A DNA stretch of 64,000 bases from positions 104,284,001 to 104,348,000 of the forward strand of contig NW_026262734.1 in assembly GCF_021869535.1 (NCBI RefSeq), in the 5' to 3' direction. The position numbers and the translations under genes were made by a program. Positions 5,367-55,400 of the stretch are shown piece by piece. Under the pieces are notes generated by a model. It did not search any database. It was not told where the DNA came from and saw only the letters and a list, made by a program, of their open reading frames with translations. This DNA comes from Mytilus californianus (lineage: Eukaryota). Position 1 is the first letter of the stretch, and each line of letters begins with the position of its first letter.

Positions 5367-6667
5367 GTTTGACGGGTTCGTAATGTGCAGAGAGCGTGGC
5401 ACTCTCTTTAAACGAGGCATCGGATTCAACGTCCCCATTCTGACCGGACGTTGCTGCACACTTTTACATCCCGCACAACCAAACGAACACCCCACTTTGG
5501 CAATGGTTTTACTGCCGGTCGAAAGAAGACCAAGACTGACCACATTTCTGTTCCCCGGTCAACCTATGGGGTTCAACCAAAGAATTACACAGCATGGATG
5601 TTAACAAGTTTATGTTAGCGTACGGCCTTACATAATTAGCAAAACCAATTAGTAAGCACCATAGTATGTGAAATCAGTTTGAGTGCTACAAATCATTAAA
5701 GTATAAACCAAAAAAATAATATTTTGAACTGCGTTATTTATTGTGAAGAGTGTCGATGCCTATTCTAACTCGATATGTTTTGATAAGAAATTGTTAATTT
5801 ATTTTTAAGAATTCATTGCTGTTTTTTATATTTTTTTTTCGTTCATTGTTTTGTACATGGATCAGGCCATTAAATATCTCGTGTGAATTGTTTTACACTT
5901 TCGGGGCCTTATATAGTTAAAATATTCGGTATGGGTTTTGCTCATTCTTGAAGTCCGTACGGTGACATATAGTTGCATTGTTCTACGTCGTTTGGTCTCT
6001 GGTGGAGAGTTGTCTCATCGGCAATCATACATGAACCACATCGTCCTATTTATATAATGATAGTAATTTGCAGGTAATGAAATAAATACGTAGGTCTTAA
6101 TAGCAACTGGTTAGCTCTTCTATATATCATTCTAAGCATTACAATTTCAACACCAAAGGACTTGGTCTTGTCACGTGTTTAAAATTTGTAACTCAGAAAG
6201 ATGGACTTGAATAGCACATGAATCACAAAACAGATCTTAACCAGAGAAACCTATTTGGCACTTTGTTTGATGATCAAGAAAAGCATGACGAAACAGTTAT
6301 AAAAAGATATAATAGCAATTTAAAAAGATTTGCAAATTGAAATATCAATAGTTGCCACGCATATGACGTTTTTGGGAATGTAATAAGATTTCAATTTTCA
6401 ATTTTCGTACAAAAATAACTGTATTAAAATAAGTTTGTTAGTGTCGTTAGGTCGTTCGCTTATTAACGTGTACTCTTAATTTCCATTTAATATAACCAAC
6501 GAATTTTTAAATTGGTATACTAAACATTCATTACCATGAAAACCATGTTTAAAAGTAGGATTCTAATTTACCTTGTCTGCATATATTTTTTTTCTCATTG
6601 GAAATTAATTTTCAAAATTATAACACCGGTAAAAGTCTACAATCGTTTTTAATCCTTTATTTATTTT

Positions 6668-6936
6668 TCAAGGTTCATGCCCTAGAGGATATTCACAGAT
6701 TGCAGGCGCATGAATTGTACAGCTTCTGCGGTCCCAGTAATATCCGTTATCCGAGTCCCCGGATTCAGCCTTTCCAATGCTAGCGCAATGTTCGCCATCA
6801 GGTTTGGTTTGATCATGTGATCCAGGTCTCCAATGAGAGTACGTTTGTCTCCGTAATATATCACCTGTGCTCCTCCAGTGCCATGGGCCGCTGAAACTTG
6901 ACGAGTTCCTATAAGCATCTAGCCAGTAACGATTAG
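6668..6936 (-). CDS. Gene B terminal exon: CTL part 3 (NRYWLDAYR...WRPGSHDQTKPDGEHCASIG...YWDRRSCTIHAPAICEYPLGHEP*)
   Basis: ORF 6668-6949; ttccag acceptor; AATAAA directly after the stop codon; 269 nt, as in the paralog. Confidence 0.92.
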
Positions 6937-9900
6937 CTGGAAGATACAAATTTATAGGTATGAATTAAAGACGATGCGGTGTACACATCAATGAGACAGC
7001 AAACTAATGACACTTATAGCCAAAAGGATATCTAGAAGTCAGAATAGTCTTCAACGATACACGTGTGTCTAATATGCCGAACCCTAAATGGTCATTAGTC
7101 TAAAAAGTTGTGAGTGAATTAAGCAAAAACGTACAAAAGTTATACCATGAATACGAAGATATCCTTCCAACTGACGAAACAATAAAAAAATGAAATAAGA
7201 TAAGCAATGACGACAGTCCTAAGTATATGCATGAAATGATTGATATTAATTAATCAAAAAAACCTAAATAAAGTTGAAAATACAATAATGTGAAGTGCTA
7301 AAGGCACTGAATTTCTCAAAAAAGACATGAACCATGATTGTGAATTTATTTTACTTGTTTAATTCATGACTAACAATTTCATAATCGCAAAAAAAAACAT
7401 AAATTTCAGCTATATTTCACCATGAAATGTTTGAATCAAGTCTTTCTTTCTTCACAATGACCCAAAAAAATGGATTACATCATATTCACATTTAGATATA
7501 GGGTACGTTTGGTGAAAATGTCAATCTGCCTGATGTTGTTATGATATCCAAGGGACAACATTTAAAGTTATATATATACTACATGGGGGATCTATTTACA
7601 TTTTTGGGTTTTTTAAAAGAGATTAATGATTGTTCATGTCAATCTTATTAAAATACAGATACTGTGTCCACGCTTCTCCACGCTTCGATTATAAAGATCT
7701 GTCTACAGTCCGTTCTAGTTTCTGTTTATAATACACCCCTTGGGATCTTCTTGTTTTGTCTTTTTATTACACCCTTTTGGGATCCTCTTATTTTGTCTTT
7801 ATAATACACCCTTTATGGATCCTCTTGTTTTGTCTTTATAATACACCCTTTTTGGATCCTCTTATTTCGTCTTTGTAATACACCCTTTATGGATCCTCTT
7901 GTTTTGTCTTTATAATACACCCTTTTTTGGATCCTCTTATTTCGTCTTTGTAATACACCCTTTATGGATCCTCTTGTTTTGTCTTTATAATACACCCTTT
8001 TAGGATCCTCTTGTTTTGTCTTTATAATAGTCTTTAAAATACACGTTTTGGGATCCTCTTGTTTTGTCTTTATAATACACCCTTATGGGATCCTCTTGTT
8101 TTGTCTTTATAATACACCCTTTTGGGATCCTCTTGTTTTGTCTTTATAATACACCTTTTGAGATCCTCTTGTTTTGTCTTTATAATACACCCTTTTGGGA
8201 GTCTCTTGTTTTGTCTTTATAATACACCTTTTTGGGAGTCTCTTGTTTTGTCTTTATCATACACCCTTTTGGGAACCTCTTGTTTTGTCTTTATGATACA
8301 CACCTTAAGGAATCTTAAGGTTGAAAGTTCATTTGCTGATGTAAAAATTACCAGAACAGAAGTTAGCATTGAGTGCTGTCAGATCCTTGTAAGCGATGCA
8401 TGGACACTATACATTCTTACTATATATTCTTTTGATAAAGGAAACAATTAGAATTCATCCAAATCTGACCTTATTTTATAAAAATAATAATAGTGCTGAA
8501 CAGTTTATTACCCTGATGTCGCTGTTGACTTAAGAGTTGGGATATTGCCAAATTTTCCCTTTTGCTGCTAATAATAACGAGTCTCGTACAAAAATATTTA
8601 CACACATTCTAAAAAAAAAATGAAATACAGCAATCATAACTCCAGAATTTTACATGGTGACATAGCGTTGGTGACACCTGTTGTTTTTTATTCACATGTT
8701 TCAACAGGAAAACATAATGAAATTATCTTTGATGGAACATGTAATTGCATATTACAAAGGAGTTTATGCCTATAAACTATGGCTGCATTCCGTCTACCAA
8801 ACTATTTTTTAGACGATGTTCAGTGTCGAATATTTCGAGTTGTTATACATGCTACATGGCTTGGCGTCTCGGGCGTAATTAATGAAGGTTTTCGGGAAAT
8901 ACCTGTCATACTTGATCCGTGTAAACTCATCGAACCTTTAAACAAACTTATTAATAAAGGTTATCTTATCAATATTGTAATTAGATCTTTGAATATTGTT
9001 TATATTGGCACAAATATCGATTTTGTTATCAACAAATTAAAATATAACTAAATTTGTATTCTTTTCAAATGTTTTTTGGGATGTATAAATACACATCCAC
9101 GAAATTACTTTATCTATATATAACATTATACATATTTATTAAAAGGTTAAATCCTAACTATCCTACTGCCTGTCGATACTTTTATCTTTGGCATTGCACA
9201 AGTCAATGTTTTTTTGACTGTCCATGACGTTAAAACACTAAATCCCTCGGATGTGTTTTAGATGAGTTTAGTCTCTAATGAATTCTTTTTTTTTTTTTTT
9301 GGTTATTAATTGTTTTTGGCTTTTAACTAGCTTTCAGTAACTGCGAGTACTCTCAAATCGTACTTTCGTGTTAATTTGACCTGTTGATACAATTTGTAAT
9401 GCATTTTTGTTATTTAATGTTTACTTATTTTGTGTTATATCTCGTCTCACTATTTTTAATATATACCCCCTTTGATAAGTATTTAGTACAACGATAAATT
9501 TTCACTTCTGTTCACGTTCTATGAACAACAAATTTATTTATTTCGTAAAAAATATTTCCGTACTCCATGTACTGCATACAACAAAATTATTTGTATTTAC
9601 CTGTGTACGTTATTTTATTAAACGGCATTTTGTCCAAGGTTATAGTTGTCTTTCTTATATTGTTTTACATCTCATCCCTTTTTTTATTAATTTTGTATTT
9701 TACATTGTGTCATAGATGAAATTTATTCGTTCAGTGTATGTTGAATTGTTTTTGTGAATATGTCTTTTGATTGGGTTAAGCCATTTCAATTGATATTTTA
9801 TCGTGAGTCTTTCTGTGTTGTGATGTTACACTATTATTTCAGGTTAGGGTGAAGATTGGCGCCTGTTAAAACGTTTAAACCCGCTGCATTTGTTTGCGCC

Positions 9901-12900
9901 TGTCCTAAGTCAGGAACCTGTTGTTCAGTTGTTGTCGTTCGTTGATGTGGTTCATACGTGTTTCTCGTTTCTCGTTTTTTATATAGATTAGACCGTTGGT
10001 TTTCCTGTTTGAATGGTTTTACACTTATCATTTTTGGGGCCCTTTATAGCTTGCGGATCGGTGTGAGCCAAGGGTCTGTGTTGAAGGCCGTACTTTGACC
10101 CATAATGGTTTACTTTAATTTAAAAAATGTGACTTGTGTGGAGAGTTGTCTCAATGGCACTCATACCACATCTTCTTATTATATATAACATGTATAATTA
10201 GGGAACGCTGTGGGGTTCTTTTATTTTCATATTTTTACAGTGCAATGACTATTAAACTATTAAATCCAATTGATTTTGAAAGAAGACCAACCCTATAACA
10301 CATATTTTTAATTAAAAACCGACAAAACATCATATGATAATCGTCCGTGCTATTTTGTTTAATTGTAAAATAATCCCTGATAAAATTAACTTGGATTTGA
10401 TTTTCATGACAAAAATGATTTTATATTTATAAATATTTTTTTGTTAACCTTCACCTTTCATCAATCTTCTCGGCTGTTTGGGAATCTCGAATTGATTTCA
10501 ATCATTAAAAAAACGCAAACATGGGTATATGTATCTTCAAATGAAATATGGCCAAATTAAAAGATTTGCCTATATATTTTTTTCATTATTTCTATCCTCA
10601 CTGATATTATTAATACAGTTTAATTTCTTGGACAGATATTTTACATGTGACTCAAATTATATAAGTAGTTTAATTTCGTTTATGCTTCGTTGATAAACTG
10701 TTTAGAAATATTCTTTAACAATGTACATGGTACTACTGACACTTATGATATAGTAAAAATACATACCCTTGCGTCATGCATTGTTCTTGCGTGTTGACCA
10801 AAGAAGTAGCAGCTTTGTCCTTTTCGGATAAATCTCAGTGGGCATTCATGTTCAAAACTAGGTTTACAACCTAAAACAATTTAATAAAAACAGGTGACGT
10901 GTTGTAGATCAAAATGAATGATGGTTATAACAAACAAAAAACGTATATCGATAAAGAGACGATCAGACTCACGTGATAAAGCAAAACAAATAAACAGAAG
11001 AAAACAAATATTACACAACTCAAATTACTCAACGAATCGAGGAGTGCAATTTTTACTGTAAAGTTTATCAGAATTGCAGATAAACTAAACAAACCCAAAT
11101 CCTAACAACGCATTATAACATAGCATTAAAATAAAATAGTGAACCTTAAGCAAAAGAAATAATAACCCCTTTAAAACAAAAAATGGATAAACTCATGTAT
11201 CCCGTAATAGTGAGCAGTTCCCGCTGCCTTAGTGGTATCCGCCTGTGTCATTTCAAGTGATAATTCGTCGATACATCGCATTCGGTAATGTCACAATCGA
11301 AATAAAAAGGAGGATATTGTAGCTCCATCACATGGAACATATTGTTAGTCATCAGATACGCAGAGACGTGTAATATCTTATCACAATTAACCTCAATTGA
11401 CTTTTAATCATGGAGAAAAACTGAAATATAACTTTTGCATTCAAAATAATGGACAGCAATGGAAATGTTCTTGTACATCAGACTGAATGGCTGTCCCGTT
11501 TACCTATATACGTCTATGATTCTATTATCTATACATATTATGACCAATTTGCAATCAGTTATATGTCAAAGAGATTGAAAAACAGGATATAAACTGTTTT
11601 TTATATGTGCATCCTCCGCCCAACCCATACGCATACCACCTCGCAGTCCACAGAAAACGTATGCTAAGTACTTCAGGATGGTCATTTGTTTTTTTTTAAA
11701 TTAGATATAACTTCTCATTCTATATATTGTGACATACATTTACACATTGGCATTTTCTTTTTCAAATCAAACCATTTCAGAATATGTTCATACATATTTA
11801 AGTATCAGAGTACTAAAATAAAAACTTTACATGACTTTTTGTATGTTAATCAACATTGTGTACATCATTTATATCCTTTTTTTATGATTAAAACATTCCA
11901 AAAAATTGATATAACCAGATCCACAGTTCATGTTTCTGATACATGTTGTAACTCTGCTTTGAAAAATTTAAGAGACTTATAAATTTCCAACAAAAAGATA
12001 ATTACCTTCTTGAGATACAATGTAGATGTACCTTATGTACCTTTTGTAAAAAAATCTAAAAGAAACACCTAGACTAGAATTGTCACTTATTAAAACATGG
12101 AGACCTTCAAAATACTGAGCTTGGTGAAAAATGTTTTCTGAGTTTATTATTTAGCTCAAGATTATATATTCTTACGCAAACTTGTCGTAACTACAAGCCC
12201 GTCTCCTTTTCCCCGAATGTGACTTACCAAATTAGACTTATCACCAGGTTTGTACTTACACGAGTAACACGACGGTATCCACATGTGGAGCAGGATCGGC
12301 TTACACTTCCGGAGCACCGGAGATCACCTCCGGTTTTTGGCGCGGTTCGTGTTACTCAGTCTTTGGTTTTCTATGTTTTGTTTTGTGTACTGTGGTTTGT
12401 CTGTTTGTCTTTTTTTTCTTTTTTTTTCCAATGGCGTTGTCAGTTTATTTTCGACTTATGAGTTTGAATGTCCCTTGTGTATCTTTCGCCTCTCTCTTGG
12501 TATGGATAATGAGATGATAGTTTTAGCTTGCTCAAACTTTTTTTTAATATCAGAAATCAAAACAGTATATAGTTCAACAAATTCTGGTAGCGCTTTTCCG
12601 ATGAGACTAGAAGTACAAATGATGGTTTTCCTCATTTGACCAGCATAGATCACATTTCATAAGTTTATTTTTCAATAAACAGTTCATAATATGTCTCTTC
12701 ACTGATTTGAGGTAACTTAGTTAAAGCGAAATATAATTTTGGGTCTCCTGTAATGAATATAGACTTACCAATAATTGTTCTTTTTTTTTTAAATCTATTT
12801 GTAAGTTTAAATTGTCGAGTTTTGTACACATTGATATCATAAAATATCAGCATTGAAAACCAATAATTTCGGAAACTGTGCAAAAACGGTTAATAATACC

Positions 12901-21900: not shown

Positions 21901-24117
21901 TGGGATTTGGAACAGCACCATACAAATCCTTGCATACCTATCAGAATAAAAAATGTTAATAAAAATTCAGTCAAAAAATAGAACAATATGAGTACTTCAG
22001 TCGTTTAATATCTTTTTGAAATATTCGAAACATGGCCATACTATATATGTTGTCTAGTAGAAAACTGCATGACACATATGGAAGAGGGTGGTAAAGGGTT
22101 ATTTTCGTGCAACGTGTTTTGCCATTTTTATTTCACGTGCAGCCGTGCAAAAGGTTCGTTATTCATCGTGAAATCGGTAAAAAAATCAACGTGCGAGAAA
22201 TTTTTAATTGTTCGTTCATCGTGAAATGGCAATTTTATTTCGCGTTCTTCCGTGCAGATACCCCCACCCCCCTTTACGCCCCTCATGAAAGCTTATATCT
22301 GTACATGAAAAAAGTGTGGTTTCACATATGTGTTTGAGCATAAATAACAATTCAAGCAATATCTGAATGAAAAATCTATGGTGTGTTTTTCTTTCATAAG
22401 GGACATAATAACGGTGGAGTTTAATTCCGTGTGAAGCTTAAATATGTGAATTCACATTACATTGTAACACGTCTTAAAATGAACTTTTTGTATAGGGTTT
22501 AAGGCTAACAAATATTTAAAAATACTTGAACTGGAATAATGTACAGAGAAGAAATGGTATTTCCCTTCATGATTTTGGTCAGTTATATTTGTAAAGAAGA
22601 GACTGTGACAGGGGACTTTGATAAAACATTTACAGTTTTGTTAGATACTTGCCATATTATCTACACATCCAAGCTGAAACTTTTTCTCAAGAGATGCTGT
22701 TACTGTTTGGCTTGCAATACAGGACTTAAAATAATGACATATGAAAATTATAATGTAATAATGGAAACAATTGACATAGTATAAAGCATTGAGAAAATTT
22801 AAAAGTAAACATCAAGATGGTTAGGAGAAAGAAGAGTAAAAAGCGGATACATATTTTTGAAATGTTCTTGTAAAAATGCAACAGATAAAAGATGTAAGAA
22901 CGCAACACAGAAACAGTAATTTAAAATTTCTTGAGATAATTATTTTCTATATAACAGATTAAAGCTATTGAAATTTTAACGGTATAATGTAAATGTTTTT
23001 CCATCGTTAATTAATTGCTAAATTATATTTATACTTTCGCTAGAAGGATAATGGTCTTCAGTACTTCTTTACCTTCTGTCCGCCTGTCTGTCTGTCTATC
23101 CGTCCAATGATATTTCTTTACATTTTTTCATTGGAACTATAAATAAATCAGAGCTTTCTGAGATTTGTATCGAGCTTCCATAAGCATGCTCGAAGTAATT
23201 ACGTATTTTACATTAGTGTTTCAGTAGTGTTATGTTACCACATATTTATCGCGGTGTATCATTGTGAATGATGTGTTAGCCACAACTCACAATACATCTT
23301 GTTTCTCTTACTTCCTCTTACTAAGCAGTTGGAGAATGGTTAATCTCATAGTTAACACTTACCATGGACAAATTACTGCAGTGAACTATGTGTAGACAAT
23401 CTGAAGGATGATCTACATGTTCACACGAATAACATTTCAAAGCTGAAATAAAGGAACATACAGGCAAATTTCATTCTGTACAAGAACATGGGTGTTATTA
23501 CTTTAACATTTTAGAATATTATTGTTATAACTTTAACATTTTAGAATAATATTTCAAATCAAAGAGACCATATGTGGACTCTTCTTTGGAACACGATACA
23601 AAATAGCTAATAAATATAGAATATGACGAATCTATAAGTGAAATAAGAAACTAAAATAAACATTCACAAATGAACATGCAGTCAGGCATATTACAAATAA
23701 TTCAGGAAAATTTAACAAAATTTCACAGATAAGCTGGTTGTCATCATGACAGACTATATATAATCTAAAAACGAATGAATATACACACTACACAATCCAC
23801 GGGTCCTAGGACATAGTGTTGGAACACAGTTGTGCTTACGCATGACTTGTCTTATGGCTGCTAGTCTTTAACATCATTCAATACTTACGACACAGTCCAC
23901 AGGTCCTAGGATAGAGAGTTGCCATACAGTTGTCCTGACACATATCTTGTTTTATGGCAGCTAGTCTTTGGCATCGTTTAATACTTACGACACAATCCAC
24001 AGGTCCTAGGACAGAGAGTTGCCATACAGTTGTCCTGACACATATCTTGTTTTATGGCAGCTAGTCTTTGGCATCCTCTAACGCTACGATCTTCACAGTT
24101 GTTTGCACCACACATAA
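6668..24117 (-). CDS. Gene B (spliced, 5' end unresolved): ShKT-LU-ShKT-LU-Ser/Thr linker-C-type lectin mosaic protein. Exons 24117-23989, 23442-23363, 22724-22653, 21937-21790, 20910-20770, 20153-20077, 16505-16431, 15347-15191, 10870-10767, 8608-8512, 6936-6668
   Basis: Each exon was read by hand with an AG acceptor and a GT donor (one GC). Phases chain without conflict over 1349 nt with no internal stop. Two complete 10-Cys LU patterns ending CCxxxxCN, two CPxTCGxC ShKT motifs and a long-form CTL Cys pattern are present. Confidence 0.88.
7720..8300. repeat. ~38-bp minisatellite, about 15 copies, intronic
   Basis: Unit tgtctttataatacaccctttatggatcctcttgttt. Confidence 0.95.
8512..8608 (-). 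CDS. Gene B exon: CTL part 2 (NVCKYFCTRLVIISSKRENLAISQLLSQQRHQ)
   Basis: T-rich ttttag acceptor, gtaata donor, phase 0-1; C...L.II.S..EN helix motif. Confidence 0.88.
8690..10190 (+). mobile_element. 3' part of the same Penelope-like family (RT C-terminus plus long 3' region)
   Basis: ORF end LIEPLNKLINKGY...IDFVINKLKYN* matches 44760-44900 at the nucleotide level; continues into the common repeat tail ...gagagttgtctcaatggcactcataccacatcttc. Confidence 0.7.
10767..10870 (-). CDS. Gene B exon: CTL part 1 (CKPSFEHECPLRFIRKGQSCYFFGQHARTMHDAR)
   Basis: gttttag acceptor, gtatgt donor, 104 nt (same length as paralog exon 61092-61195); CP...SCYxF motif. Confidence 0.9.
12966..13885 (+). mobile_element. 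Helentron-associated-like (HINE/pearl-type) element with ~161-bp internal tandem repeats
   Basis: About 3.6 copies of a ~161-bp unit; (acggaatg)n microsatellite; 3' hairpin atggccccgacaac-ttt-gttgcggggccat; A-tract end. Confidence 0.72.
13963..14989. mobile_element. Non-autonomous hAT-like DNA transposon (1027 bp)
   Basis: TIRs CAGGGTTGGCAAA / TTTGCCAACCCTG; subterminal CCCGGG and CCCAG repeats; 8-bp TSD accaccag/accaccat. Confidence 0.85.
15191..15347 (-). CDS. Gene B exon: LU domain 2, part c plus Ser/Thr/Pro linker (NCKDLLAMHIEGVCCDSNFCNGNYVPSTTLIQPTSTVVPTT...)
   Basis: atgcag acceptor, gtaagc donor, phase 0-1; paralogous to 62136-62334. Confidence 0.9.
15660..15930 (-). mobile_element. 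Tc1/mariner transposase C-terminal remnant
   Basis: LSPALYQEWQRLQQQLIQGFNHGMRKRLASVIRVNRGATSY resembles the Tc1 C-terminus; degenerate SPDLNPIEH-like motif upstream. Confidence 0.7.
16431..16505 (-). CDS. Gene B exon: LU domain 2, part b (ESCIAVESHIFNFKEGYKLGCVAKQ)
   Basis: tttttacag acceptor, CAG|gttaga donor, 75 nt, phase 0-0. Confidence 0.86.
16660..17790. repeat. 30-bp minisatellite, about 37 copies, intronic
   Basis: Unit gacgaagtggaagacaaaacagtccaatccaat with variants; explains the long low-complexity ORFs in several frames. Confidence 0.97.
17977..19471 (-). mobile_element. 5'-truncated, 5'-inverted L1/Tx1-type non-LTR retrotransposon
   Basis: zf-RVT ORF on minus (18241-18891, CTFRKEEPESIEHLLWGC); upstream RT C-terminus on plus (FIWDGKPDKV...GGLKMI); T21 tail at 17976-17996; TSD AATTGACAGCTTTAT at 17962-17976 and 19472-19486. 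Confidence 0.92.
20077..20153 (-). CDS. Gene B exon: LU domain 2, part a (LTCYECASIDMPEHCRDRVMCDGHK)
   Basis: Seen inside ORF 20029-20217; AAG|gtaagc donor, phase 1-0. Confidence 0.88.
20770..20910 (-). CDS. Gene B exon: ShKT-like domain 2 (QPSGKTDGVSAACSEMDTEVCRYLSENNGCDQTCVASLCPQTCGKC)
   Basis: tttttaaag acceptor, gtaagt donor, 141 nt, phase 1-1, CPQTCGKC motif. Confidence 0.88.
21790..21937 (-). CDS. Gene B exon: LU domain 1, part c (VCKDLYGAVPNPTQSKVRRDVDLIGGCCSSDLCNKYNEPDKIPAPTINP)
   Basis: ctgatag acceptor, G|gtatgt donor, 148 nt, phase 0-1, CCSSDLCN motif. Confidence 0.88.
22084..22284. mobile_element. Small MITE in a gene B intron
   Basis: Imperfect TIR gagggtggtaaaggg / ccctttacgcccctc; internal repeated cgtg motifs. 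Confidence 0.55.
22653..22724 (-). CDS. Gene B exon: LU domain 1, part b (SCIASQTVTASLEKKFQLGCVDNM), GC donor
   Basis: ttttaag acceptor, ATG|gcaagt donor, 72 nt, phase 0-0; homologous to the LU2 part-b exon (SCI...LGCV). Confidence 0.82.
23363..23442 (-). CDS. Gene B exon: LU domain 1, part a (LKCYSCEHVDHPSDCLHIVHCSNLSM)
   Basis: tttatttcag acceptor, gtaagt donor, phase 1-0, LxCYxC LU start. Confidence 0.88.
23791..24080. repeat. 100-bp tandem repeat x3 derived from the ShKT1 exon 3' end and its donor
   Basis: Unit starts at 23791, 23891 and 23991; each translates to a ...C..TL(C/Y)PRT(C/R)GLC motif on the minus strand. Confidence 0.92.
23989..24117 (-). CDS. Gene B exon: ShKT-like domain 1 (MCGANNCEDRSVRGCQRLAAIKQDMCQDNCMATLCPRTCGLC)
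   Basis: ttctag acceptor, C|gtaagt donor, 129 nt, phase 1-1, CPRTCGLC motif. Confidence 0.85.
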
Positions 24118-25529
24118 CTAGAACTTAAGTTTAGCAGGAGTAAGTAATACAGAACGAAAAGAAAATTATATGCACAATGATAATTGTTTAAATACATTTT
24201 ACAGTAATTATAGTTTTCGGTATTATTTTATATATGAAACACCGCTTGATGTAATAAATGTCAACTTCACCTTATAAAAGAAGTACATGGGTCAATGAGT
24301 AAATCAATATAAAAAAAGATGATAAAACTGAAAAACAGTTTAATGTAAGGGTGTTATAATAATATACCTTCCGATAATATCACAAATACATTCATTTAAA
24401 CGTAGTATCCAGTTCTATACATTTTTTTGTACATTGACGATGAAGACAAAAATTATTCATTATTGAATTTTATATCGTTTTGTGAAATGTTCATCGAAAT
24501 GGCATGAATAACCATAGTGAGTAAATTTCTACATGACACTAAATTATGTATTACTTTCACATCAATTACATTGTAAAATACTGATTTATGAAGAAAAAAA
24601 CCCGCATAAAATATTCATCAAAATTAGAGTTATGAACTATTCACAAGCGGTTAATTTTTATTTAATTATAAACAAAAGTACTACAAATTTTCATTATAAC
24701 GTATATGTATGTAGATGTAACACTTTGTTATAAGTTGAAATAAAAAAATAAACGAAAGAATTGTGAAATGATACCAGTGAGTTCGACCTAACTTCTAATT
24801 TGTTTAGTGTTACATCTTAATCTATCATCCCGTGACAAATTGTACTATATCAAGGTAAGTATACCATAACATTACACATACACTAGTTACTGCGATCCCG
24901 AGTCTTACTGCAACAAAGACATCTACATATATTACCAAATTCAAACAACGTTGAAAAAAAATATGTTCAGCCAATCTTCCATGACTGTTTCATCATACCT
25001 AATGTGCTTAGCGTAATTCCATATGCCAATGACATGACTCTACTTAACCATTAAATTCCACTTGTGTACATGTACTTATCGTGGACCAACTTACACATGT
25101 AGATACTATATTTGCGTAATCATTGATATGACTTTCATTCAATTGTAAGGCGTAACTAATTTTAAACCGTTACAGTAATATTGTTTTAATCCCTTTTGAA
25201 ACAAACTGCAAATTATTTTTTAAAAATATATAACGACAAAAATGTTTGAATGGTAAACAGCAGTAAATCTCGTATCAAAGAATTCAGTAATCTGTTATTA
25301 GATATATAAGATATTGGATATGTCAATGCGTCAATGAGACAGAGACCGAACAATAAAAACAAAGAAAGACAACGACAGGTAAACATAGGGTCTTAGACAG
25401 ACGACAAATGTATAAACCATATTATTTCAATACTTTAATGGCACTGGGTCTAGACATGATGGGATTAATAAAACAGAAACTACCTGTGGAGATCTGAAAT
25501 CTTTTGATACTTTATCCGTACAAAATGAA

Positions 25530-36594: not shown

Positions 36595-36679
36595 GTTTGC
36601 GTAAAAGGTCACCAGTGCTCATCCAGTGCCCCGGGCCACTGGAACATGACGATTTTCTATAGGCGTCAAGCCAATAACG
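36595..36679 (-). pseudogene. 5' half of a CTL terminal exon (RYWLDAYRKSSCSSGPGHWMSTGDLLRK)
   Basis: Hand translation; no acceptor; truncated after LLRK. Confidence 0.88.
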
Positions 36680-37974
36680 GTATGAAGATATGAGTGTCAA
36701 GCAGTCATTGAGCTTTCTATTCTTACTGTGACGTATTAATATAAGCATTGCAACATAGTAATGGAAAAGAAAGTGGACGCATACGCAAGTCGTCTATTGA
36801 GCGTCCATTATAAAATAATATATGCAACTTTACTGTTGTACAAAAACCCTCGAACATTTAGAAATCGTTTCAGTTGTTCATGATATTTACCAATTTGTAA
36901 ACCCAATATAACCCCACTGCAACCTTATTAACAAGAACGTAGGTGATTTTAATTTTCCAGATAATAGGTATTTACAATAGGTTATTATTTTCCTTATCTA
37001 GGGCCATCTCGAAAGTTTACGGCGCCTTCATACTGAATCTGTTGGACATGTACTGATTGCTACTTAAGTCTGAGAGAACATGACTTATTTGTTTGTTGTT
37101 ATTCAATTTGAAGTAGTTTTCAGTAACTGTGAGTACTCTTACATGTACATCGGTACTTTGTGTATTTTGTTTTTATGTTAGTTGTCCATGTTGTTATGTT
37201 TGTGCTAAACTTATAAGTTAAGCAATTTCTAACTACAATGTTTACAGTTTGTTCTTATATGGTGCTGGTATAACACTGTCGAACGTTAAGGGGTGGTTGA
37301 GCTTACAAACATGGTTGACCACGCCACATTCTATATGTGCCTGTCCCAAGTAAGGAGCTTGTTATTCAGTGGTTGACGTTGGTTGCTGTCTGTGTTCACT
37401 TTTTTCATTAATTGGTTTGTCAACAACAAGGTCGTCGGTTTTTCTTTTGAATTGTTTCATATTTTGTCATTAGGTGACATATCTATCTATTGTCTCCCAA
37501 AGCGTTGTGATCTGTTGACGATCATGTCAGTTTTAACAAATTCATGATGTCATTGTGAAATCGCAGGTGACTTTTCTTCACAAAAGTTTTACTTTTTTTG
37601 TAATTTCATTGGTAAAATAACTTAAAAAACATGAAAAATATATAAAACTAAAAGGTTAAAAAATTATCACGAATCTTAAATTTACGTCAAATAATTGCTA
37701 CAACGAGTTATCTATATCAGTTTTGCTTAAACTAAGGTAAGGCTGAACATTCAAAATACTCAATCTACTTACTTTCGTTTATTGAATATTTTTACCTACT
37801 ACTACATTTGCTCATAAGGTTTATCTGCAAACATTATACAATCACTTTATTTTACACGGACGCTATTTAAATGAATTATTCTTTATTTCACTGAAATTGT
37901 AAATTTAAGAGTAGCAATTATAGTGTTATTTTAAATTCTAAACGGTATTCGAATCAAGTTTTGCAAAACGTTAG

Positions 37975-39608
37975 CTATTTGCAATTGTATATTTGCACCA
38001 AGCCAGTGATATTTGTTACAGCAAATTTGGTGAAGCTCTCATTAAACGCAACAGCGAATGGAGTTTTAATCCTCATCACTACATCATGCTCTCGCCCATC
38101 TGGTAATACACGTTGTATCTCGCTTTTATAGCATTCACTCACGTACACATTTCCTTGTGTGTCAACAGCTATACCTGCTTCTCCTGCCACTGCATGACTA
38201 TATACAAGAGTTCCGTCTAAATGAATACGATTAATCAGTCCCATTGTTCTATTAATTATGCTGCCATCATTAAGAATGTAGTGTAGGAAACTAATATACT
38301 TAGACAAATCGCCTATCACAATGATCCTGATGCATTCTCCGTTGGATTTCAATATGTTGATTTCTGTCTTTTTACCGACTGCAATATAATCCCCAGCGGT
38401 AGTAATACCATAGCAACTTTAACCTACTCTGATGGTTTTATCCCGTTTCAAAGTTGTTGTATTGATAAATTGAACAAACTTCTTTTTTGGTAATGTAACA
38501 ATTGCTTTGTCGGTTCCAGTTAATACAGAAATGCCATATGGAGCACCGGGAAGACTTAACGTAGTTTTATATGTAAGGTTTGGTGGATTGATTTTGAAGA
38601 CATATAAGTTATCCCGTGTTTGCTGGAAGTCACATAAGAATAATGAATTGTCTTCAGTAATAGCTACATCTGTGATAAGCTTTCCATATTGGAACTTTTC
38701 TAATATTTCCAACTTGAAAGCGAACATGGATTCAACTCTTGCAGGCGGAACCTCAGTTGGCTTGGGTCTTACTAGACTGTTTTGAATACCACATGCTTTA
38801 CTGACCTCTTCTATTGATCCAATACATTTTATATTGCCTTTGTTCTTAAATTTCAAATCAGCCTTTTTGTATGACAGTGTCATATCCTGCGCCCGTTTAA
38901 AAATATCCTGCACTCCTTTTCCTTGTTCCCGAAGAGTAAGGTACAACTGATTATTTGATCCATGTTCCTTGAGAAATTCTAGTACCTGCGTTCTCTCCTA
39001 CACAAAATCACACAATTCCGATATTTCCGAATTTTCTTTTCTTAATAGATCTACGGTTTTCTCCTTGATATTTGAGAGGTCTGTCTTCATTTTTTTTTCT
39101 GAAGTTCTGATTTTTGAAATTAATTGATTTTTCCATTTGCTGATATCTTCTAAAATGGCGGTTTCTACCGAGTCTAATTCATTTATATTTTCATTTCGAG
39201 CCGTTCTTAAATGATCCAAAGTTGTACCAATATTTTGCCATTCACGTAATGTATCTCCAAATAGAGAAGATTTGTTTATGTTTTTTGAAGCGACCTCTAA
39301 CGGAAGGACGTCTTTGCAAGACTGATGATAACTAGATATGCATATTTTACAACATACTGTGCCGTGATGCGTACAGTACAAATCTAGCGGTACATCTTGA
39401 TGAACCTTGCAAAGACGTCTTCTATTGGTATTTTCGATCTCGAAATTGACGTCAAGCTCATCAAACAGTGTCTCCTGGTGGCTCTAAATACCTTATGGTG
39501 ATCTACACAATCTTCACAAAGACACTCTTTGCAATCTAAACAAAACTTTATTGCCTCTATCGATTTTCCATCTTCGGAACAAGGGCCACAATACCAATTG
39601 GAAGACAT
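37975..39608 (-). pseudogene. Second RING-less TRIM-like B-box/beta-propeller copy, pseudogene
   Basis: Four ORF pieces collinear with 45398-47049: a 1-bp frameshift near 39415, an in-frame TAG at 38998 and an in-frame TAA at 38419. Confidence 0.9.
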
Positions 39609-39821
39609 CGTATAACTAGAAGATAAAAATTCCTTTTAGTGATCGATTGTATCGGGTATGATCATTTTTGTAATCAGCACAAGATCCCATAATTATGTAA
39701 ATAGACATCGATGTAATAAATTGACGAAAACTTTCTCATTATTCCCCAAGTTTTCCTGGCTTCAAAAACTTATTGCCTAGGGACGTAAATTGTCTGTTAC
39801 ATTTAGCATACATTTCATGTT

Positions 39822-39913
39822 ATTCAGGTCTCAGACATGATATATAATGTTACATTCGGATATAAACCCTAAGCCGGGAATGTCACATTATATACCCTGT
39901 CTGAAACCTGAAT
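39822..39913. repeat. Fold-back inverted repeat with ~36-bp arms
   Basis: attcaggtctcagacatgatatataatgttacattc vs the reverse complement of gaatgtcacattatataccctgtctgaaacctgaat. Confidence 0.85.
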
Positions 39914-41803
39914 TACACATATATTACGGATTACCCCTGCCTTAATGTTTTTTCACGTACCAGATATTTGTTTAACATTCACAATGCAGTATATATATTT
40001 TCCGTATACCGTGAGGGATTTTGTAATTTTGGCTGTGAAAACAATACTATCGTGTATGCATTAATTTGTAATAAAAGAGGGACGAAAGATACCAGAGGGA
40101 CAGTCAAACTCATAATAACACTCTAAGACAAGACATTTATTAAGTATTTGATGTGTAAATTACGTGATTTTAAATCAAAAACGTATTATTGACAGATACA
40201 CGTCATTTTATTCCCTCTGTGAGCCTCTGACGTTCTTTAAGTGTTCTTTATAGCCTAAGACTACGTCACATAGTAATGTTCGTTATGATGACGTTGTTGA
40301 GGTTCCAATTGGGATAAAAAAAGTGGTATAAACCCCCGGCTGTTTCCTAAATATATACCGACATCTCTTTGTTGTTATCCAAACACAAGACTTGACACAT
40401 TTATAATCCGTAATATATTTCAAAATCTATAGGCAAAATAAACTGCTCAGGATTTGAATCTCCCTTTGACCGAATAAAAAGCTTCATATCTTTTACTGTA
40501 ATGTTGTAACATTCTAACGTAGTATTTTTACTTAAACGAAATTGTACTTTTGCATTTGCTTGTTTGTCCTTGGTCCTTTCAAAATGTATCATAGATATTT
40601 TTAACCAAGATATACCACAGACTATACATTAATGATAATCATAGCAATACTAGATCTTACCGAATAAATATTATCGTACCTGTCCACAGTGTACCTGTTT
40701 AAGTTTTAGTCACATGGTGATTTGATGAGATAATTTGCATAGTAGCTTAACAAGGACATTTGATTGATTTACCTGTTGAAAATTGATACAATAAAAATTT
40801 AATACCTCGTGTTTTTATTTCATTTGCTATTACCACAGTTTGTACTGTATAGTAATGATAATCATAGCAATACTAGATCTTACCCAAAAATAGTGTTGTA
40901 CCTGTCCACAGTGTAACTGTTGAACGTTTTAATAGTCGCATGCTGATTTGATAAAGATATTTTGTATGGTAGCCTAACAAGAACATATGATCGCTTTACC
41001 TATTAAGAATTCATACCATAAGAACTATTACATTATGTGATTTTTTCATTTGCTATTACCAGTTATTTTTCCTCTTCGTCTCGTATAGAATATGAGTAGA
41101 CATATAACCCAATACGGCTACTTTGTGTGAGCTCGTATTGGCCATTGTTATGTAATCTTGTGTCAATCTTGTTTGTATATTCTTAGTCAGCCTCTATTCA
41201 TTAATCAAAGTTCTTTTTATTACAACCAGGTGTGAATGAGTCGAACTTCTTTAGAAAGTATATTCAGTTCTGATGACTTTTCGAAATAGCCGAGATTTAT
41301 ATTTAAGGTAAGCAACATTTAATAGAAAAGAGTTGTTGTATAATAATGACCACATCAACCTCAATTTATTATAGTTATACGCTTAAAACGTATCCTGCAA
41401 AACCTTTCCAATGTAAAATTGTATAATAATAATTATGTCATAGGTTTTATTGAAAATTTACACTATTCAAGGACTATCATTTCTCACAGAACTTAAATTT
41501 CAATGTTGGATGTTCTGCAGATTCACTTTAGAGATCACACATATGTGGATTTTTTGTTCCTTTAAAAATGAAATGATTTTCTGAATAAAAGTAATCATAT
41601 TTTTGATATGCTTTGAATACATTTGTACATCAATATACAAAAAAAAACAACAGTTGTTTCTATTTCCTAGACAAAATGTAATTACAAAATTACTAAACTC
41701 CAAGGTTAATTTAATAAGGTGACACCAAACGCTTGACTATATCAACCAACAAAAAACCCATCAAGTTCAACAGAAATCAAATTTATCAAATTATTTTATC
41801 ATT

Positions 41804-41999
41804 TCAGGGTGCATGTTGTAAGGGATTCTCACAAAGCGCAGGCGCATGATATTTTCAGCTTCTATGGTCCCAAAATTATCCATTTCCTGGATCGTTTGAA
41901 TCGACCTTTCCTATGCAAGTACAGTGTTTGCCATCAGGTTTTATATGTTTTTGTGATTTATTCCTCCAATGTGAGTACATATGTTTGCGTAAAAGATCA
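41804..41999 (-). pseudogene. 3' half of a CTL terminal exon (DLLRKHMYSHWRNKSQKHIKPDGKHCTCIGKVDSNDPGNG*FWDHRS*KYHAPALCENPLQHAP*)
   Basis: Hand translation homologous to the A/B terminal exons; two premature stops; 5' part missing. Confidence 0.9.
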
Positions 42000-45397: not shown

Positions 45398-47049
45398 CTA
45401 TTTGCAATTGTAGATCTGCACCAAGCCATTGATACTTGTAACAACAAATTTGGTAAATCTCTCATTAAACGCAATAGCGAATGGATCTTTAATTCCATCC
45501 TTATAAGTCATCACTACATCACGGACTCGTCCATCTGGTAATAAACGTTGAATCTCACTTCGATCAAATTCACACACGTACACCTGTCCTTGTGTATCAA
45601 CAGCTAAACCTGCTTCTCCTGACAACACATACCTATATGATATTGTTCCGTCAAACTGAATACGACTAATCAGTCCCATTTTTCTATAAATTATGCTGCC
45701 ATCATTATGATTGTAGTGCAGAGAACTAACATACTTAGAATCATCTAATAAATCGCTTAACACAATGTTCCTGATGTTTTCTCCTTTTGATTTGAATATT
45801 TTGATTTCTCTTATTTTACCGACTGCAATATAATCCCCAGTGGTCGTAATACCAAAGCAGTCTCGACCTACTTTGATGGTTTTATCCAGCGTCAAAGTGT
45901 TTGTATCGATAAATTGTACATAAGACTTGTATGGCAATGTAACAATTACTTTGTCGGTTCCAGTTAATTTAGAAATTCCATATGGACCACTGGGGACACT
46001 TAATGTTGTGTTGTATGCTAGGTTTTGTTGATTTATTTTGAAAACATATATGTTATATCGTTCTTTCTGAAAGTCACACAAGAGTAATTTATTGTCTTCA
46101 GTAACAACTACATCTGTGATGAGCTTCCCTAAATATAACTGTTCTGTTATTTCCTTTTTGAAGGTTAGCATTGATTCAACTTTTACTGGCTGAACCTGAG
46201 CTTGCTGTAGTTTTACTGGACTATACTGAATGACACGTGCCGTCCTAACTTCTTCTATCGATCCAATACATTTTATATCAGTATCACTGTTTTTCTTAAA
46301 TTTTAAATCTGTCTTTTTGTATGACAGTGTCATATCCTGCACCCGTTTAATAACTTCCTGAACTCCTTTTCCTTGTTCTCCAAGAGTAAGGTACAACTGA
46401 TTATTTGATCCATGTTCCTTGAGTTCTGTTTTCTCTCCTGCACAACATCATACAGTTCTGATATTTCAGAATCACCTTTTCCATATAAATCTAAGATTTT
46501 CTTCTTGGCATTTGAGAGGTCTGTCTTCAGTTTTTCTTCTAAAGTGTTGATTTGTTGAATTAAATATTTTTTCCATTTGTTGATCTCTACTAATATGGCT
46601 GTTTCTACTGTTTCTAATTCATCTGCATAACCATGTCGATCCTTTTTTAAATGATCCAAAGTTTTAACAATGTTTTGCCATTCACTTAATGTGTCTTCAT
46701 ATAACGAAGATTGTTTTATGTGTTTGGAAGCGATCTCTAGCGGAATGACATCCTTGCAGGATTGATGAGAAGATGGCATACATACTCTACAACATACTGT
46801 ATCGTGTTGTGTGCAGTAAAAATCTAGCGGTACATCTGGATGAACATTGCAAAAGCTCTTGGCAATCGGTATTTTCGATCTCAAAATTGATGTTAAGTCC
46901 ATCAAATGGTGGGACTTGGTGGCTTTAAATTTCTTATGGTATTCTACGCAATCTTTACAAAGACGCTCTTCGCAATCTGAACAAAACCTTATTGCCGCTA
47001 TTGATTTTCCTTCTTCTGAACAAGGGTCACAATACGAATTGGAAGCCAT
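45398..47049 (-). pseudogene. RING-less TRIM-like gene (B-box1, B-box2, coiled-coil, beta-propeller/NHL-like), single coding exon, frameshifted by a net 10-bp deletion near 46424-46430
   Basis: ORFs 46330-47049 (CDPC..C..C...LC..C...H; C..H....YC..H...CC..C...H) and 45398-46396 overlap out of frame. Alignment to the paralog shows 7 nt where the paralog has 17. Splice acceptor 7 nt before the ATG. Confidence 0.85.
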
Positions 47050-52189: not shown

Positions 52190-52458
52190 TCAGGGTTTAT
52201 GTCCTACTGGATATTCACAGAGCGCAGGCGAGTGAACTTTACAGCTTCTATGGTCCCAAAAGTACCCATTTTCTGGGTCACTTGATTCTGCCTTTCCTAT
52301 GCTAGCACAGTGTTCGCCATCAGGTTTTATGTGACTATGTGATCCAGGCCTCCAATGTGAGTACACATGTTTACCTAAAAGTTCACCAGTGCTCATCCAG
52401 TGCCACGGTCCGCTGAAACTTGACGAATTCCTATAAGCGTCAAGCCAATAACGATTCG
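52190..52458 (-). CDS. Gene A terminal exon: CTL part 3
   Basis: ORF 52190-52531; ttacag acceptor; 68/89 aa identical to the gene B terminal exon by hand count. Confidence 0.92.
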
Positions 52459-55400
52459 CTGTAATAAACCAAACAATTAAATGAAGGAATTCCGTGTGAA
52501 AATGAGAAAAAAAACTGGTATACGAACACAATTAAATTTCATGTTATAAAAAAAAATTATCAATATAATCAGAGGTGATGGATACTTATGTTTGAATTAT
52601 TATTGATTTTAATGTATAGTTGTTAGTTATGGCGAAAAATCAAGTAATTATATCATTGTATAATTAATTTATACATACTATTGGAAATGTTCAGTTTATT
52701 TGAATTATTTCAAATGTAAATTTTAATTTGATTTTTATTTCCTGAAACTGACTATTAGGCACATAAAAAAAGAGAGACGAAAAATGTCAAAGGTATTCAA
52801 ACTCATACGTCGAAGACAAACTGAAAAGGCCATGGAAAAAACAAACTACTAAAAAAAAACATAAAACCACGAAAAGACAAACAACAGTCTACAAAGTACA
52901 ACATAGAAAATCAAAGACTCAGAAACACGAGCCCAGACAAAATTGATAAACTATTGTCTTTATAAAAAAATGTTTGAGAAACAAAAGTTAAAGATAATTA
53001 AAACCAGGAATTCGATATATTGGTTAATAATTTTTCTGATGATTATTAGAAATGTATATTCAGTTTTTTTGTTTTATTAGGAAAAGATTAAAAGTATCAG
53101 ACGTTTGTTGTAAATAGTGTATGCAACTTTACTGCGAAGTTGAAATTTGGTTAGATTGTTGTAGTGAAGGAAACAAAAAACATTAAGATTTGGTAATTTC
53201 AGTGGATCATTGTTATTATTAATTTGTATATCAAATATAGTCAGTGCCAACTTTTTCACATGAAAGTTAGTCATCTCACTTTGCAAAGGAAAGGGTATTT
53301 AAAATTGACTCTTTCCCCCTATATCCAAGTCTATCTTGGTTGTTTATCAAACTGTTAATAAATCGGTTGGATGTGTACTGATTGATATTTTAGCCTGAGA
53401 GAAAATGACTTATTTATTAGTTGTTATGAAATTGGAAGCAGCTTTCAGAAACTGTGAGTTCTCTTAGATCGGTAATTTGTGTCTTTTGTTTTTATGTCAT
53501 AATTTTTTTTACCGTAAAGAAACACGCTTTACATCACCAAGTTCTACATATTTGTCTGTCCTAAGTCAGGAGCCTGTAATTCAGTGGTTTTCGATGGTTG
53601 CTGACTGTTATATTTGTTTTTTTTTTGTTTTTTTGTTTATCTGTTTATCATCAATTCGCCCTTTGGTTTTTTGTTTGAATTGTTTCATATTTTGCCATAT
53701 CTTGTATAGCTGAATACACTGTACTCATTGTTAGAGACCGTACGATGACTAATTGAAATTAAATCCATAACATTTGAATTCTGGTTGATAGTCTTATCAT
53801 TGGCAATCATACCACATCGCCGCATTTTTATAATTAGGCACCATTTATGGCCCCTTGACTTTATGAATTGTAAAGTATTACTAATCTACCAAATAATATC
53901 CTTTAGGTACTCATTAGATATTAGTCTGACCGTTACCAGTATTCAATGTTTAAAATTTTGTCTTATATATTAAAGTTAAGGCTTAACCCTCTTGCTGCTG
54001 CTAATTTTATATGGTTGCATTTCGTGTGCCAGAAAAAACGACACCTGGACGTCTATGACGTCACATGCCCACAAATGACGTAATTTGATATATATATAAC
54101 GTCACGCCCTAGTTTTTATTTGAAAGAGATACAGCAATGATTAAAAGCTTGCATAATTAAACAAATGGACATATATAGAATAACGACATTTTTGATTTTG
54201 ATATTAACTTTATCAGTCAGAATATCAAGCGAGCCCGCTATGGCTAGCTGATATTCGAGCTGATGAAGTCAGTATCAAAAAATAAAATGTCATTATTTTT
54301 TTTATCGGCAATTTGTGTTAACTGTATGTTTTTTGGGTGGAGAATATGAAGTAAAATGAAATAGTAAGTAAAACTACTTTTACGCGTACAAAACGTTGGG
54401 ATAGTTGTTCGGTTGAATGAATGAAGTAGTATACATGTGATGAATTGATGCGGATGGACTTGATCACGTGACGTTGCTGCACTGATAAATGACGTCATTG
54501 CCCAATATTTTCGAGTATCAAGTCCTGTCCATGATCTTAAAAAATATAAGGCAGTAGGATCAAAGGGAAAATGTACAAATTGCCGATAAATTTGTCTCCC
54601 CGGCACAGCTGGTGGCGTGAACACATTTGTCCCTCTGGCAGCAATAGGGTTTAAACTGCATAACTGCAAAACTGTCAAAATAGCTCTTATTTAAAATTTC
54701 GTCATTAATATTTAGATATGAGTCATGGCATTACCGCCAAAAAGATATATTGTTATAAAATGTTAATGTGTGTAAAATATCTATTGTCTACCAATACTAT
54801 GTTATAAATTGCCACTGTAGTCCAGAGTGTCAGTTTCAACATGCTTATGACGTCATTTTGACATCACAAGAGACCCTTTCTGTAAGTTTTACCATTTTTG
54901 TAAATTAACGGCTCTTTTCATTCACCCTCTTTTTCCGAAAAAAAAAACCGGCTTTATTTCCTATGCATCAAGACAGATGATAAAAAACACAACAAGACTG
55001 GAAATGATATAAATAACAAAAGAGTAAAATGTTCATTATTCTTTATGTTAAGTTAAGTTAAATAATCATTGTAACGTGTAATCTTTATCAGTTTGTGTTA
55101 AGTAATGCATGGCAAATGTGCTAGCTCTGGCTGAACATGCCAAAATTCCCAATCTATATACTTCCTTTTATTGTTTTATGTTTAACTAAGTTAAACTCTT
55201 ATCCTACATTTGCTTTTATTACTTTGGCTACATGTGGTAATCAGCGCATAGTTGATCAATTTGCTACACATGTATATAATGTATAATGTATTACCCGTAT
55301 GTGGTTGCTGGTGCTGGTTTAGGAGCTGGGTTATCATAAGATTTTCATTTTGGCTACTAATTATGGCTAGTCTGCTACACAATCCTAAACACTCTTTCTG

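Follow-up and report, generated by a model that had tools for sequence, protein, structure and literature searches.

Gene structure and transcript evidence

A 64,000-nucleotide stretch of the Mytilus californianus genome (assembly GCF_021869535.1, contig NW_026262734.1, positions 104,284,001 to 104,348,000; termed the window, with all coordinates given as window positions) was analyzed for a minus-strand gene, gene 1, encoding a mosaic of two ShK toxin-like (ShKT) domains, two three-finger (LU) domains of the Ly6/uPAR type, and a C-type lectin-like domain (CTLD). The window is AT-rich (about 32% G+C) and contains no N runs. Stop-free segments of the minus strand between 24124 and 6668 contained ShK-like Cys patterns, LU halves with LxCYxC and CCxxxxCN motifs, and the C-terminal half of a CTLD. 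The exon model was rebuilt from these segments, paralog comparison, and splice-site phases; boundaries were read in the DNA, exons were assembled by script, and the short middle exons of the LU domains and the CTLD were located by tblastx (LU introns, paralog).

Independent splicing reproduced the 11 minus-strand exons (24117–6668) and the 448-amino acid frame of a first-pass annotation, which ran from Met 24115 to the stop at 6668–6670, but the proposed start did not hold, as Met 24115 is not the start codon. The acceptor of exon 2 lies 6 nt upstream of the earlier call, at 24123, and V-L-V precedes Met 24115; orthologue N-termini likewise show V-L-V ahead of Met or Val at this place. A 12th exon absent from the earlier model (exon 1) encodes the beginning of the signal peptide, M-S-L-A-Y-G-I-T-L-S-T-L, plus one base, and was assigned because orthologue N-termini, the DNA reading, and a cDNA alignment agreed. 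It was not clearly visible in tblastx of the paralogs' upstream regions and was located only with the orthologue N-termini. Nucleotides 3–93 of the congener cDNA contig L014 (see below) aligned to 25092–24999, extending the 5′ untranslated region to at least 25092, and past the stop of exon 12 two overlapping AATAAA signals are found at 6656–6665. A "conserved block" at 9303–9371, obtained by blastn between introns, was discarded as an exon candidate; it is a repeat. All splice sites are canonical AG/GT with the exception of the donor of the LU-1 middle exon, where GC is the only possibility (ATG/GCAAGT). The five module boundaries are all phase-1 introns, whereas introns within modules are of phase 0 or 1; phase-1 introns at every domain boundary are a layout that permits exon shuffling.

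Whether LU and CTLD exons are linked can be read from 10650–16560 (5,911 nt), and RNA reads and contigs were placed on this region. The joint 15191→10870 connects the exon with the last third of LU-2 and the stalk to the exon that opens the CTLD and leaves out 4320 nt with GT..AG on the minus strand; this 10870/15191 joint was carried by sister-species contigs from three runs of three studies (X1, X3, X4). The joint 16431→15347 skips 1083 nt and was found in X1, X3, and X4 plus two raw RNA reads of M. californianus (X21). Both intron lengths equal those predicted by the model. A 1,003-nt contig contained both joined exons and continued into letters reverse-complementary to the CTLD exon that follows, and mate orientation was consistent with a minus-strand transcript. 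The transcript was present in all 14 listed "RNA?" runs of the sister species, which stem from five studies. L014 (Logan; 1,485 nt, open reading frame of 473 amino acids) was collinear with all 12 exons; its alignment covers exon 1 and crosses the junction of the GC-AG intron. In this congener, an acceptor approximately 21 nt upstream of exon 7 (20154–20179) adds seven residues between ShKT-2 and LU-2.

The RefSeq protein XP_052074810.1 (290 amino acids; LOC127712414) is identical letter for letter to the last 290 residues of the gene 1 product, and XP_052074809.1 (P0039) corresponds to the last 298 residues of that of the neighboring gene 2. Because XP_052074810.1 starts at a Met inside exon 6, the RefSeq model of gene 1 is 5′-truncated. 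Both M. californianus models lack the signal peptide, ShKT-1, and LU-1, so that a full-length model is now at hand for a gene deposited without its N-terminal 173 residues, and gene 2 is in the same position. The RefSeq annotation, too, joins LU-2, stalk, and CTLD in one protein. As these exons are spliced together in RNA and RefSeq, and L014 spans them, the locus represents one gene, as assumed in the first pass, and not separate ShKT/LU and CTLD genes. The 12-exon gene is real and transcribed, and its junctions are not due to chance. Its exons and the other features of the locus are listed in Table 1.

Table 1. Gene 1, its paralogs, and further features of the locus (positions beyond 64,000 lie past the window end)
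Feature	Position	Strand	Remarks
Gene 1	25035-6668	-	head-to-tail with genes 2 and 3 on the same chromosome
Exon 1, coding	24999-25035	-	ATG + 12 codons of signal peptide; phase-1 donor G/GTATGA
Exon 2	23989-24123	-	end of signal peptide + ShKT-1 (7 Cys); phase 1-1; L014 aligns to 24125-23989
Exon 3	23363-23442	-	LU-1 first third, Cys 1-4; phase 1-0; Pfam Toxin_TOLIP 4.7e-4
Exon 4	22653-22724	-	LU-1 middle, Cys 5-6; phase 0-0; then GC-AG intron, donor GCAAGT
Exon 5	21790-21937	-	LU-1 last third (Cys 7-10, CCxxxxCN) + short linker; phase 0-1
Exon 6	20770-20910	-	ShKT-2 (7 Cys); phase 1-1; XP_052074810.1 begins at internal Met
Exon 7	20077-20153	-	LU-2 first third; phase 1-0
Exon 8	16431-16505	-	LU-2 middle; phase 0-0; RNA joint 15347/16431 in X21 (2 reads), X1, X3, X4
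Exon 9	15191-15347	-	LU-2 last third + Ser/Thr/Pro-rich stalk; phase 0-1; RNA joint to CTLD exon
Exon 10	10767-10870	-	CTLD first part; phase 1-0
Exon 11	8512-8608	-	CTLD middle; phase 0-1; tblastx against paralog; loose end of X4 contig at 10769 continues here
Exon 12	6668-6936	-	CTLD last part + stop 6668-6670; Lectin_C 2.5e-6 (28.6 bits) on exon alone
Repeat of ShKT-1 exon	23790-24075	-	100-bp tandem repeat, 2.9 copies; 3′ two-thirds of the exon + GTAAGT donor
Inverted-repeat element (tentative)	11276-11689		44 RNA reads join both places, opposite strands
160-bp tandem repeat	13026-13817		LU-to-CTLD intron; 3.7 copies
Minisatellite	16662-17781		LU-2 intron; 33 bp, 34 copies, 92% matches
216-amino acid open reading frame	18241-18891	-	LU-2 intron; weak zf-RVT match
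Decayed fourth CTLD last exon	36596-41998	-	pieces 41807-41998 (two in-frame stops) and 36596-36679
TRIM-like gene	45398-47049	-	two overlapping long open reading frames matching B-box zinc finger and NHL repeats; located between genes 1 and 2
Gene 2	78206-52190	-	in-window part 52190-62334; other 8 exons past window end, to about 78206
Gene 2, in-window exons	62136-62334; 61092-61195, 55295-55397, 52190-52458	-	LU2c + stalk; CTLD
Gene 3	about 155290-134673	-	intact frame

Modules of the encoded protein

The full product comprises 463 amino acids in the order signal peptide-ShKT-LU-ShKT-LU-Ser/Thr/Pro stalk-CTLD. Its N-terminus is hydrophobic with small residues at −3/−1, and the mature part, after a likely cleavage near residue 19, contains 42 Cys (7+10+7+10+8). 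There are two N-glycosylation sequons, and the stalk of 32 residues, of which 47% are Ser, Thr, or Pro, is probably O-glycosylated. The CTLD ends seven residues past its last Cys, and a hydrophobic C-terminal tail is absent. As a signal peptide is present and a membrane anchor is lacking, the product is assigned as a secreted-type protein. The rebuilt model thereby retains the earlier domain list: two ShKT-like domains, two 10-Cys LU domains, a Ser/Thr-rich linker, and a C-terminal CTLD without transmembrane or glycosylphosphatidylinositol (GPI) tail.

The Pfam ShK profile (PF01549) matched exon 2 over positions 1–37 of 37 with E = 0.0015 and 19.5 bits, compared with a gathering cut-off of 20.9 bits. 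With a profile built from 21 ShKT modules of the family, the only PDB match at E ≤ 1 was 7l2g, "ShTK domain protein" (E = 0.012). Six Cys columns with a terminal C-x3-C-x2-C are invariant in these 21 sequences, at least 90% of which carry a seventh Cys; two fragmentary relatives are labeled "ShKT domain-containing" in UniProt. The seventh Cys of both modules are missing together in the divergent relative P0024, and the ShKT module of the single-unit relative P0008 has six Cys, a distribution that weakly suggests pairing of the two extra Cys with each other. The sea anemone toxin ShK blocks K+ channels by a Lys-Tyr dyad; no such dyad was found between Cys3 and Cys4 in either ShKT module of any family member.

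Both LU modules have ten Cys, an LxCxxC start, and a CCxxxxCN end, all invariant across the family, and each is split over three exons. Toxin_TOLIP scored 21.7 bits (cut-off 21.2) on the window protein (P0034) and 30.2 bits on the M. trossulus protein P0021, on which UPAR_LY6 also scored 25.3 bits (cut-off 24.8). Single exons already gave Pfam matches to Toxin_TOLIP/UPAR_LY6. AlphaFold2 (AF2) modeling of an orthologue's N-terminal half predicted two short helices for each ShKT and β-strands for each LU module, and the top 50 listed Foldseek matches of this half were all LU/three-finger-fold proteins (uPAR, PSCA, CD59, GPIHBP1, Lynx1). Thus, of the two small folds named in the first pass, LU is borne out by Pfam and Foldseek, while for ShKT the Cys spacing is kept at a Pfam score below the cut-off.

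The C-terminal C-type lectin fold proved correct: Lectin_C (PF00059) scored 46 bits on the window protein (cut-off 22.6), and an AF2 model of the window CTLD (predicted local distance difference test, pLDDT, 80.8; predicted template-modeling score, pTM, 0.81) was matched by Foldseek with a probability of 1.0 and template-modeling scores of 0.7–0.84 to DC-SIGN, SIGN-R1, mincle, and CD23. The CTLD family profile agreed best with FcRY, PLA2R, and DEC-205, with whole-chain E-values of 7e-41 to 4e-29 that are summed over several CTLDs per receptor chain; the best single domain gave approximately 2e-8. In the hidden Markov model alignment of gene 1, the canonical EPN/QPx is replaced by S-H-D, E-D-C by E-H-C, and WND by W-D-R, so that only the Glu is retained. 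Most relatives show S-H-x and W-D-H at these Ca2+/sugar positions, and the CTLD loops of gene 3 are very His-rich. In the single-unit relative these positions still read S-P-D, E-D-C, and W-N-D; the classical Ca2+/sugar site was therefore seemingly lost within the two-unit family, with His taking its place. With the canonical ligands replaced, the earlier designation as a pattern-recognition lectin is not established.

Paralogs, relatives, and evolution

Flanking DNA and tblastn confirmed the tandem family postulated in the first pass, with three intact genes and a decayed CTLD relic, the latter between genes 1 and 2. The paralog noted to enter at 62334 is gene 2, whose exon with the last third of LU-2 and the stalk spans 62334–62136. 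All three genes have intact frames; the first seven domain exons are of the same size, 129(+6)/80/72/148/141/77/75, and the GC donor of the GC-AG intron is conserved in three of three paralogs. The signal-peptide exon of gene 3 was not located in the DNA reading. The TRIM-like gene adjoins the relic and could be the origin of the chimera seen in the M. galloprovincialis model VDI33877.1, discussed below.

In a maximum-likelihood tree, genes 1–3 were 1:1:1 orthologous to proteins of other Mytilus species, and oyster proteins fell outside; the triplication therefore predates these Mytilus species. Ratios of nonsynonymous to synonymous substitution rates (dN/dS, Nei-Gojobori) were 0.14 against the cDNA orthologue, 0.25 for gene 1/gene 2, and 0.15 for gene 1/gene 3. 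For the folded domains the values were 0.06–0.32, except for ShKT-1 in the gene 1/gene 2 pair (0.71 at a dS of only 0.10); those of the linkers (0.11–0.47) were mostly above those of the domains. As judged from these substitution patterns, the domains are under purifying and not diversifying selection.

Several observations concern exchange and duplication within the family. Between genes 1 and 2, dS is far lower in the ShKT exons (0.10 and 0.18; 20770–24123) than elsewhere (0.5–1.05), which hints at gene conversion there. Isoform X2 of M. trossulus LOC134681447 (P0021/P0035 pair) resembles gene 2 in the signal peptide and onward through exon LU2a, and from exon LU2b on it is 100% identical to the gene-1-like isoform X1; either tandem paralogs are spliced to each other here, or the annotation is at fault. 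In the repeat that duplicates most of the ShKT-1 exon of gene 1, the second and third copies lie in the intron and show decay (Cys to Tyr, then stops); splicing at the second donor would insert an extra 100 nt and put the transcript out of frame. An extra copy is likewise present in gene 2 (76267–76172), and the repeat is common to more than one species because the M. galloprovincialis model P0054 reads into such a repeat.

Four further features lie in introns of gene 1. The 160-bp repeat was covered 19–28× on one strand only in M. californianus RNA and heavily in sister-species contigs, and looks like a transcribed repeat family. The element at 11276–11689 shows fixed differences at 11286 and 11703 and resembles an inverted-repeat element whose transcripts come from another place in the genome. 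The minisatellite in the LU-2 intron is open in several frames and is the source of the longest "open reading frames" of the window, and the zf-RVT-like frame, judging from its weak match, is probably a retroelement fragment.

The same architecture was recovered in other Mytilus species and in oysters. Full-length orthologues of 464–485 amino acids are available from M. trossulus, M. edulis, and M. galloprovincialis, and a 426-amino acid model from M. coruscus; full-length identities of the Mytilus orthologues to genes 1–3 are 82–86%. XP_063397148/9 (M. trossulus LOC134681447) and XP_071178660 (M. edulis) have the same order of signal peptide, ShKT, LU, ShKT, LU, stalk, and CTLD, as do the uncharacterized VDI81804/XP_076108511 (M. 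galloprovincialis) and CAC5404344 (M. coruscus). In the last CTLD exon, 97% identity was seen with a fragmentary M. edulis model (P0001). Ostrea edulis LOC125675523 and LOC125676689, Saccostrea cucullata LOC134229266, and Crassostrea virginica LOC111101415 share the module order, the 7-Cys ShKT, and the 10-Cys LU domains; in these oyster relatives, identity is about 30%, the Thr-rich linkers are longer, and the CTLD has diverged further. A 319-amino acid transcript encodes a single ShKT-LU unit ahead of the CTLD.

A search with the last exon among 1.8 billion cluster representatives yielded only 10 relatives, with Mytilus species named in their records, and searches of 1.8 and 5.8 billion proteins, the reach of which is limited by a word prefilter, yielded only Mytilus, oysters, and Logan transcripts; a search with the single-unit P0008 returned only itself. 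In the ESM Atlas, two clusters (70 and 57 members, 100% Mollusca) combine LU and Lectin_C. In M. galloprovincialis and M. edulis, a second family locus is found on a different chromosome; it is also known from M. trossulus. For its types (P0004/P0025), no match closer than genes 1–3 was found in the M. californianus genome, where the locus is either absent or was missed; it may vary in presence between species.

Searches of the literature by architecture, Pfam names, and accessions revealed no description of a ShKT-LU-CTLD combination, and in two papers on bivalve C-type lectins, PMC10140915 (with supplements) and PMC12842671, neither LU nor ShK is combined with a CTLD. The earlier statement that the architecture is not a characterized family thus stands as far as a describing paper is concerned, but the proteins themselves are already deposited as "uncharacterized" or "C-type lectin domain-containing". 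Bivalve-specific "category C" CTLD-containing proteins have been defined as uncharacterized multidomain proteins without orthologues outside bivalves (Saco et al. 2023, PMC10140915); in contrast to the mussel family, LU, snake-toxin, or ShK domains are not mentioned for them in that paper. Lineage-specific lectin repertoires of bivalves are very large and their functions mostly unknown. The genes described here form a small, old mussel and oyster family that joins three disulfide-rich binding folds in a combination unreported in the literature searched. The family opens no long-standing question by itself; it is tractable, with three genes, clear orthologues, a visibly replaced sugar site, and an exon layout that shows mosaic assembly.

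Proposed function and comparison with known systems

On balance, we favor, with a modest degree of confidence, an expressed 12-exon gene for a secreted glycoprotein that would serve, in soluble form, for multivalent binding or bridging and whose CTLD head is of a non-classical type. The protein would act extracellularly, its CTLD carried on a flexible glycosylated stalk and holding its ligand by a rebuilt His-rich site instead of the classical Ca2+/sugar site. The two ShKT-LU pairs would add protein-binding surfaces and might be stapled to each other by the one extra Cys in each ShKT. The likeliest setting would be humoral or mucosal recognition in the mussel; responses to stimuli are described for multidomain CTLD proteins specific to bivalves (PMC10140915), which makes an immune or mucosal role plausible by analogy.

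Several points weigh against this interpretation. The ShK score stays just under the Pfam cut-off, and the full-length orthologues mostly fall short of it too. The AF2 model of the N-terminal half is of moderate confidence only (pLDDT 69, pTM 0.52), and the disulfide staple draws on a single independent relative in which both extra Cys are missing (P0024), P0008 being merely consistent with it. The RNA run of M. californianus had a depth of approximately 1× over the exons with two junction reads only, the RefSeq model of this species begins only within exon 6, and the first five exons are tied to the rest solely by the congener cDNA and the orthologous RefSeq models. Tissue, ligand, and secretion are all deduced.

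Among the alternatives, a neutralizing or inhibitory serum-type factor, which would bind and inactivate foreign or endogenous proteins such as phospholipases, proteases, or algal or bacterial toxins, appears rather unlikely. Snake blood contains phospholipase A2 (PLA2) inhibitors built from the same folds, PLI-alpha using a CTLD and PLI-gamma two LU domains. The two tandem LU domains of the mussel protein, the loss of its canonical sugar site, and the PLA2 receptor and mannose-receptor relatives as closest solved CTLDs by profile would fit such a role, but the top PDB scores are partly inflated by the many CTLDs per receptor chain.

A role in the matrix of shell, byssus, or mucus, either structural or metal-binding, is improbable in our view; here the His-rich CTLD loops would bind transition metals or mineral, in the manner of the perlucin-type CTLDs of nacre. 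His residues indeed occur at or beside the Ca2+-ligand positions (S-H-x, E-H-C, W-D-H), the loops of gene 3 are very His-rich, and one fragmentary relative is called "perlucin-like" by RefSeq; this name is automatic, however, gene 1 itself has W-D-R and not W-D-H, and the literature searches found no proteome evidence.

An equally improbable reading is that of a combinatorial secreted recognition system. The histidine site (S-H-x, E-H-C, W-D-H) would then be sensitive to transition metals or pH, the seventh Cys of each ShKT would covalently link the two ShKT-LU units, and splicing of the 5′ cassette of one paralog into the 3′ exons of the next would create hybrid proteins. Such hybrid transcripts would be possible because the module boundaries are of phase 1 and the paralogs are arranged head-to-tail, and M. 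trossulus isoform X2 suggests as much.

The first-pass annotation had combined recognition with an effector function. A toxin-like or anti-predator effector, with ShKT blocking K+ channels, the three-finger domain acting on nicotinic receptors, and the CTLD serving for targeting, is modeled on sea anemone ShK and snake three-finger toxins and accords with the secreted-type nature of a protein made of known toxin scaffolds. We consider it very unlikely, and the effector half of the earlier proposal is not supported, as the Lys-Tyr dyad is missing in the Cys3-Cys4 stretch; moreover, the modules are embedded in a multidomain protein of approximately 49 kDa and are not released peptides, selection on the domains is purifying and not diversifying, and the 10-Cys LU domains are of the Ly6/uPAR type and better matched by uPAR, PSCA, CD59, and GPIHBP1 than by snake toxins.

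Gamete recognition, in which CTLD lysins, Ly6/uPAR proteins, and CRISP-type ShKT-like domains take part in other animals, is suggested by this coincidence of domain types only and is most improbable, given the dN/dS of 0.14 and the stable 1:1:1 orthology, unlike the fast-evolving mussel lysins, and the transcript in every one of the 14 listed runs. An annotation artefact, with separate ShKT/LU and CTLD genes or a pseudogene, is barely credible and counts as refuted by the RNA joints, XP_052074810.1, and L014: the older model VDI33877.1 (P0002) fuses the CTLD exons to B-box/RRM with the ShKT separate (P0055), and the RefSeq model of gene 1 lacks its 5′ half, but the former was rejected as a mis-join, RNA contigs splice LU-2 to the CTLD, L014 spans everything, newer RefSeq models are full length in three species, and the frames of three paralogs are intact with dN/dS well below 1.

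The favored soluble binding protein combines features of three known systems. Its CTLD shares the long-form fold, the WIGL-like core, and the Cys framework with PLA2R (7qsr), FcRY (9wyt), DEC-205 (7jpt), and the carbohydrate-recognition domains of DC-SIGN, mincle, and CD23, from which it differs by the replacement of EPN/QPD by S-H-x and of WND by W-D-R/H; in contrast to the mannose-receptor family, it is a single CTLD without FnII or ricin domains and with two extra Cys. The ShKT modules resemble ShK toxin and 7l2g in the C-x3-C-x2-C ending, the P-R-T-C-G-x-C signature, and the predicted two-helix core, and differ in the seventh Cys between Cys3 and Cys4, the lack of the Lys-Tyr dyad, and the sub-cut-off Pfam score. 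The LU domains have the 10-Cys three-finger fold with LxCxxC and CCxxxxCN in common with uPAR, C4.4A, CD59, PSCA, GPIHBP1, and Lynx1, and occur in tandem as in uPAR and C4.4A; unlike these Ly6/uPAR proteins, they carry no GPI anchor and are internal, alternating with ShKT modules and followed by a CTLD.

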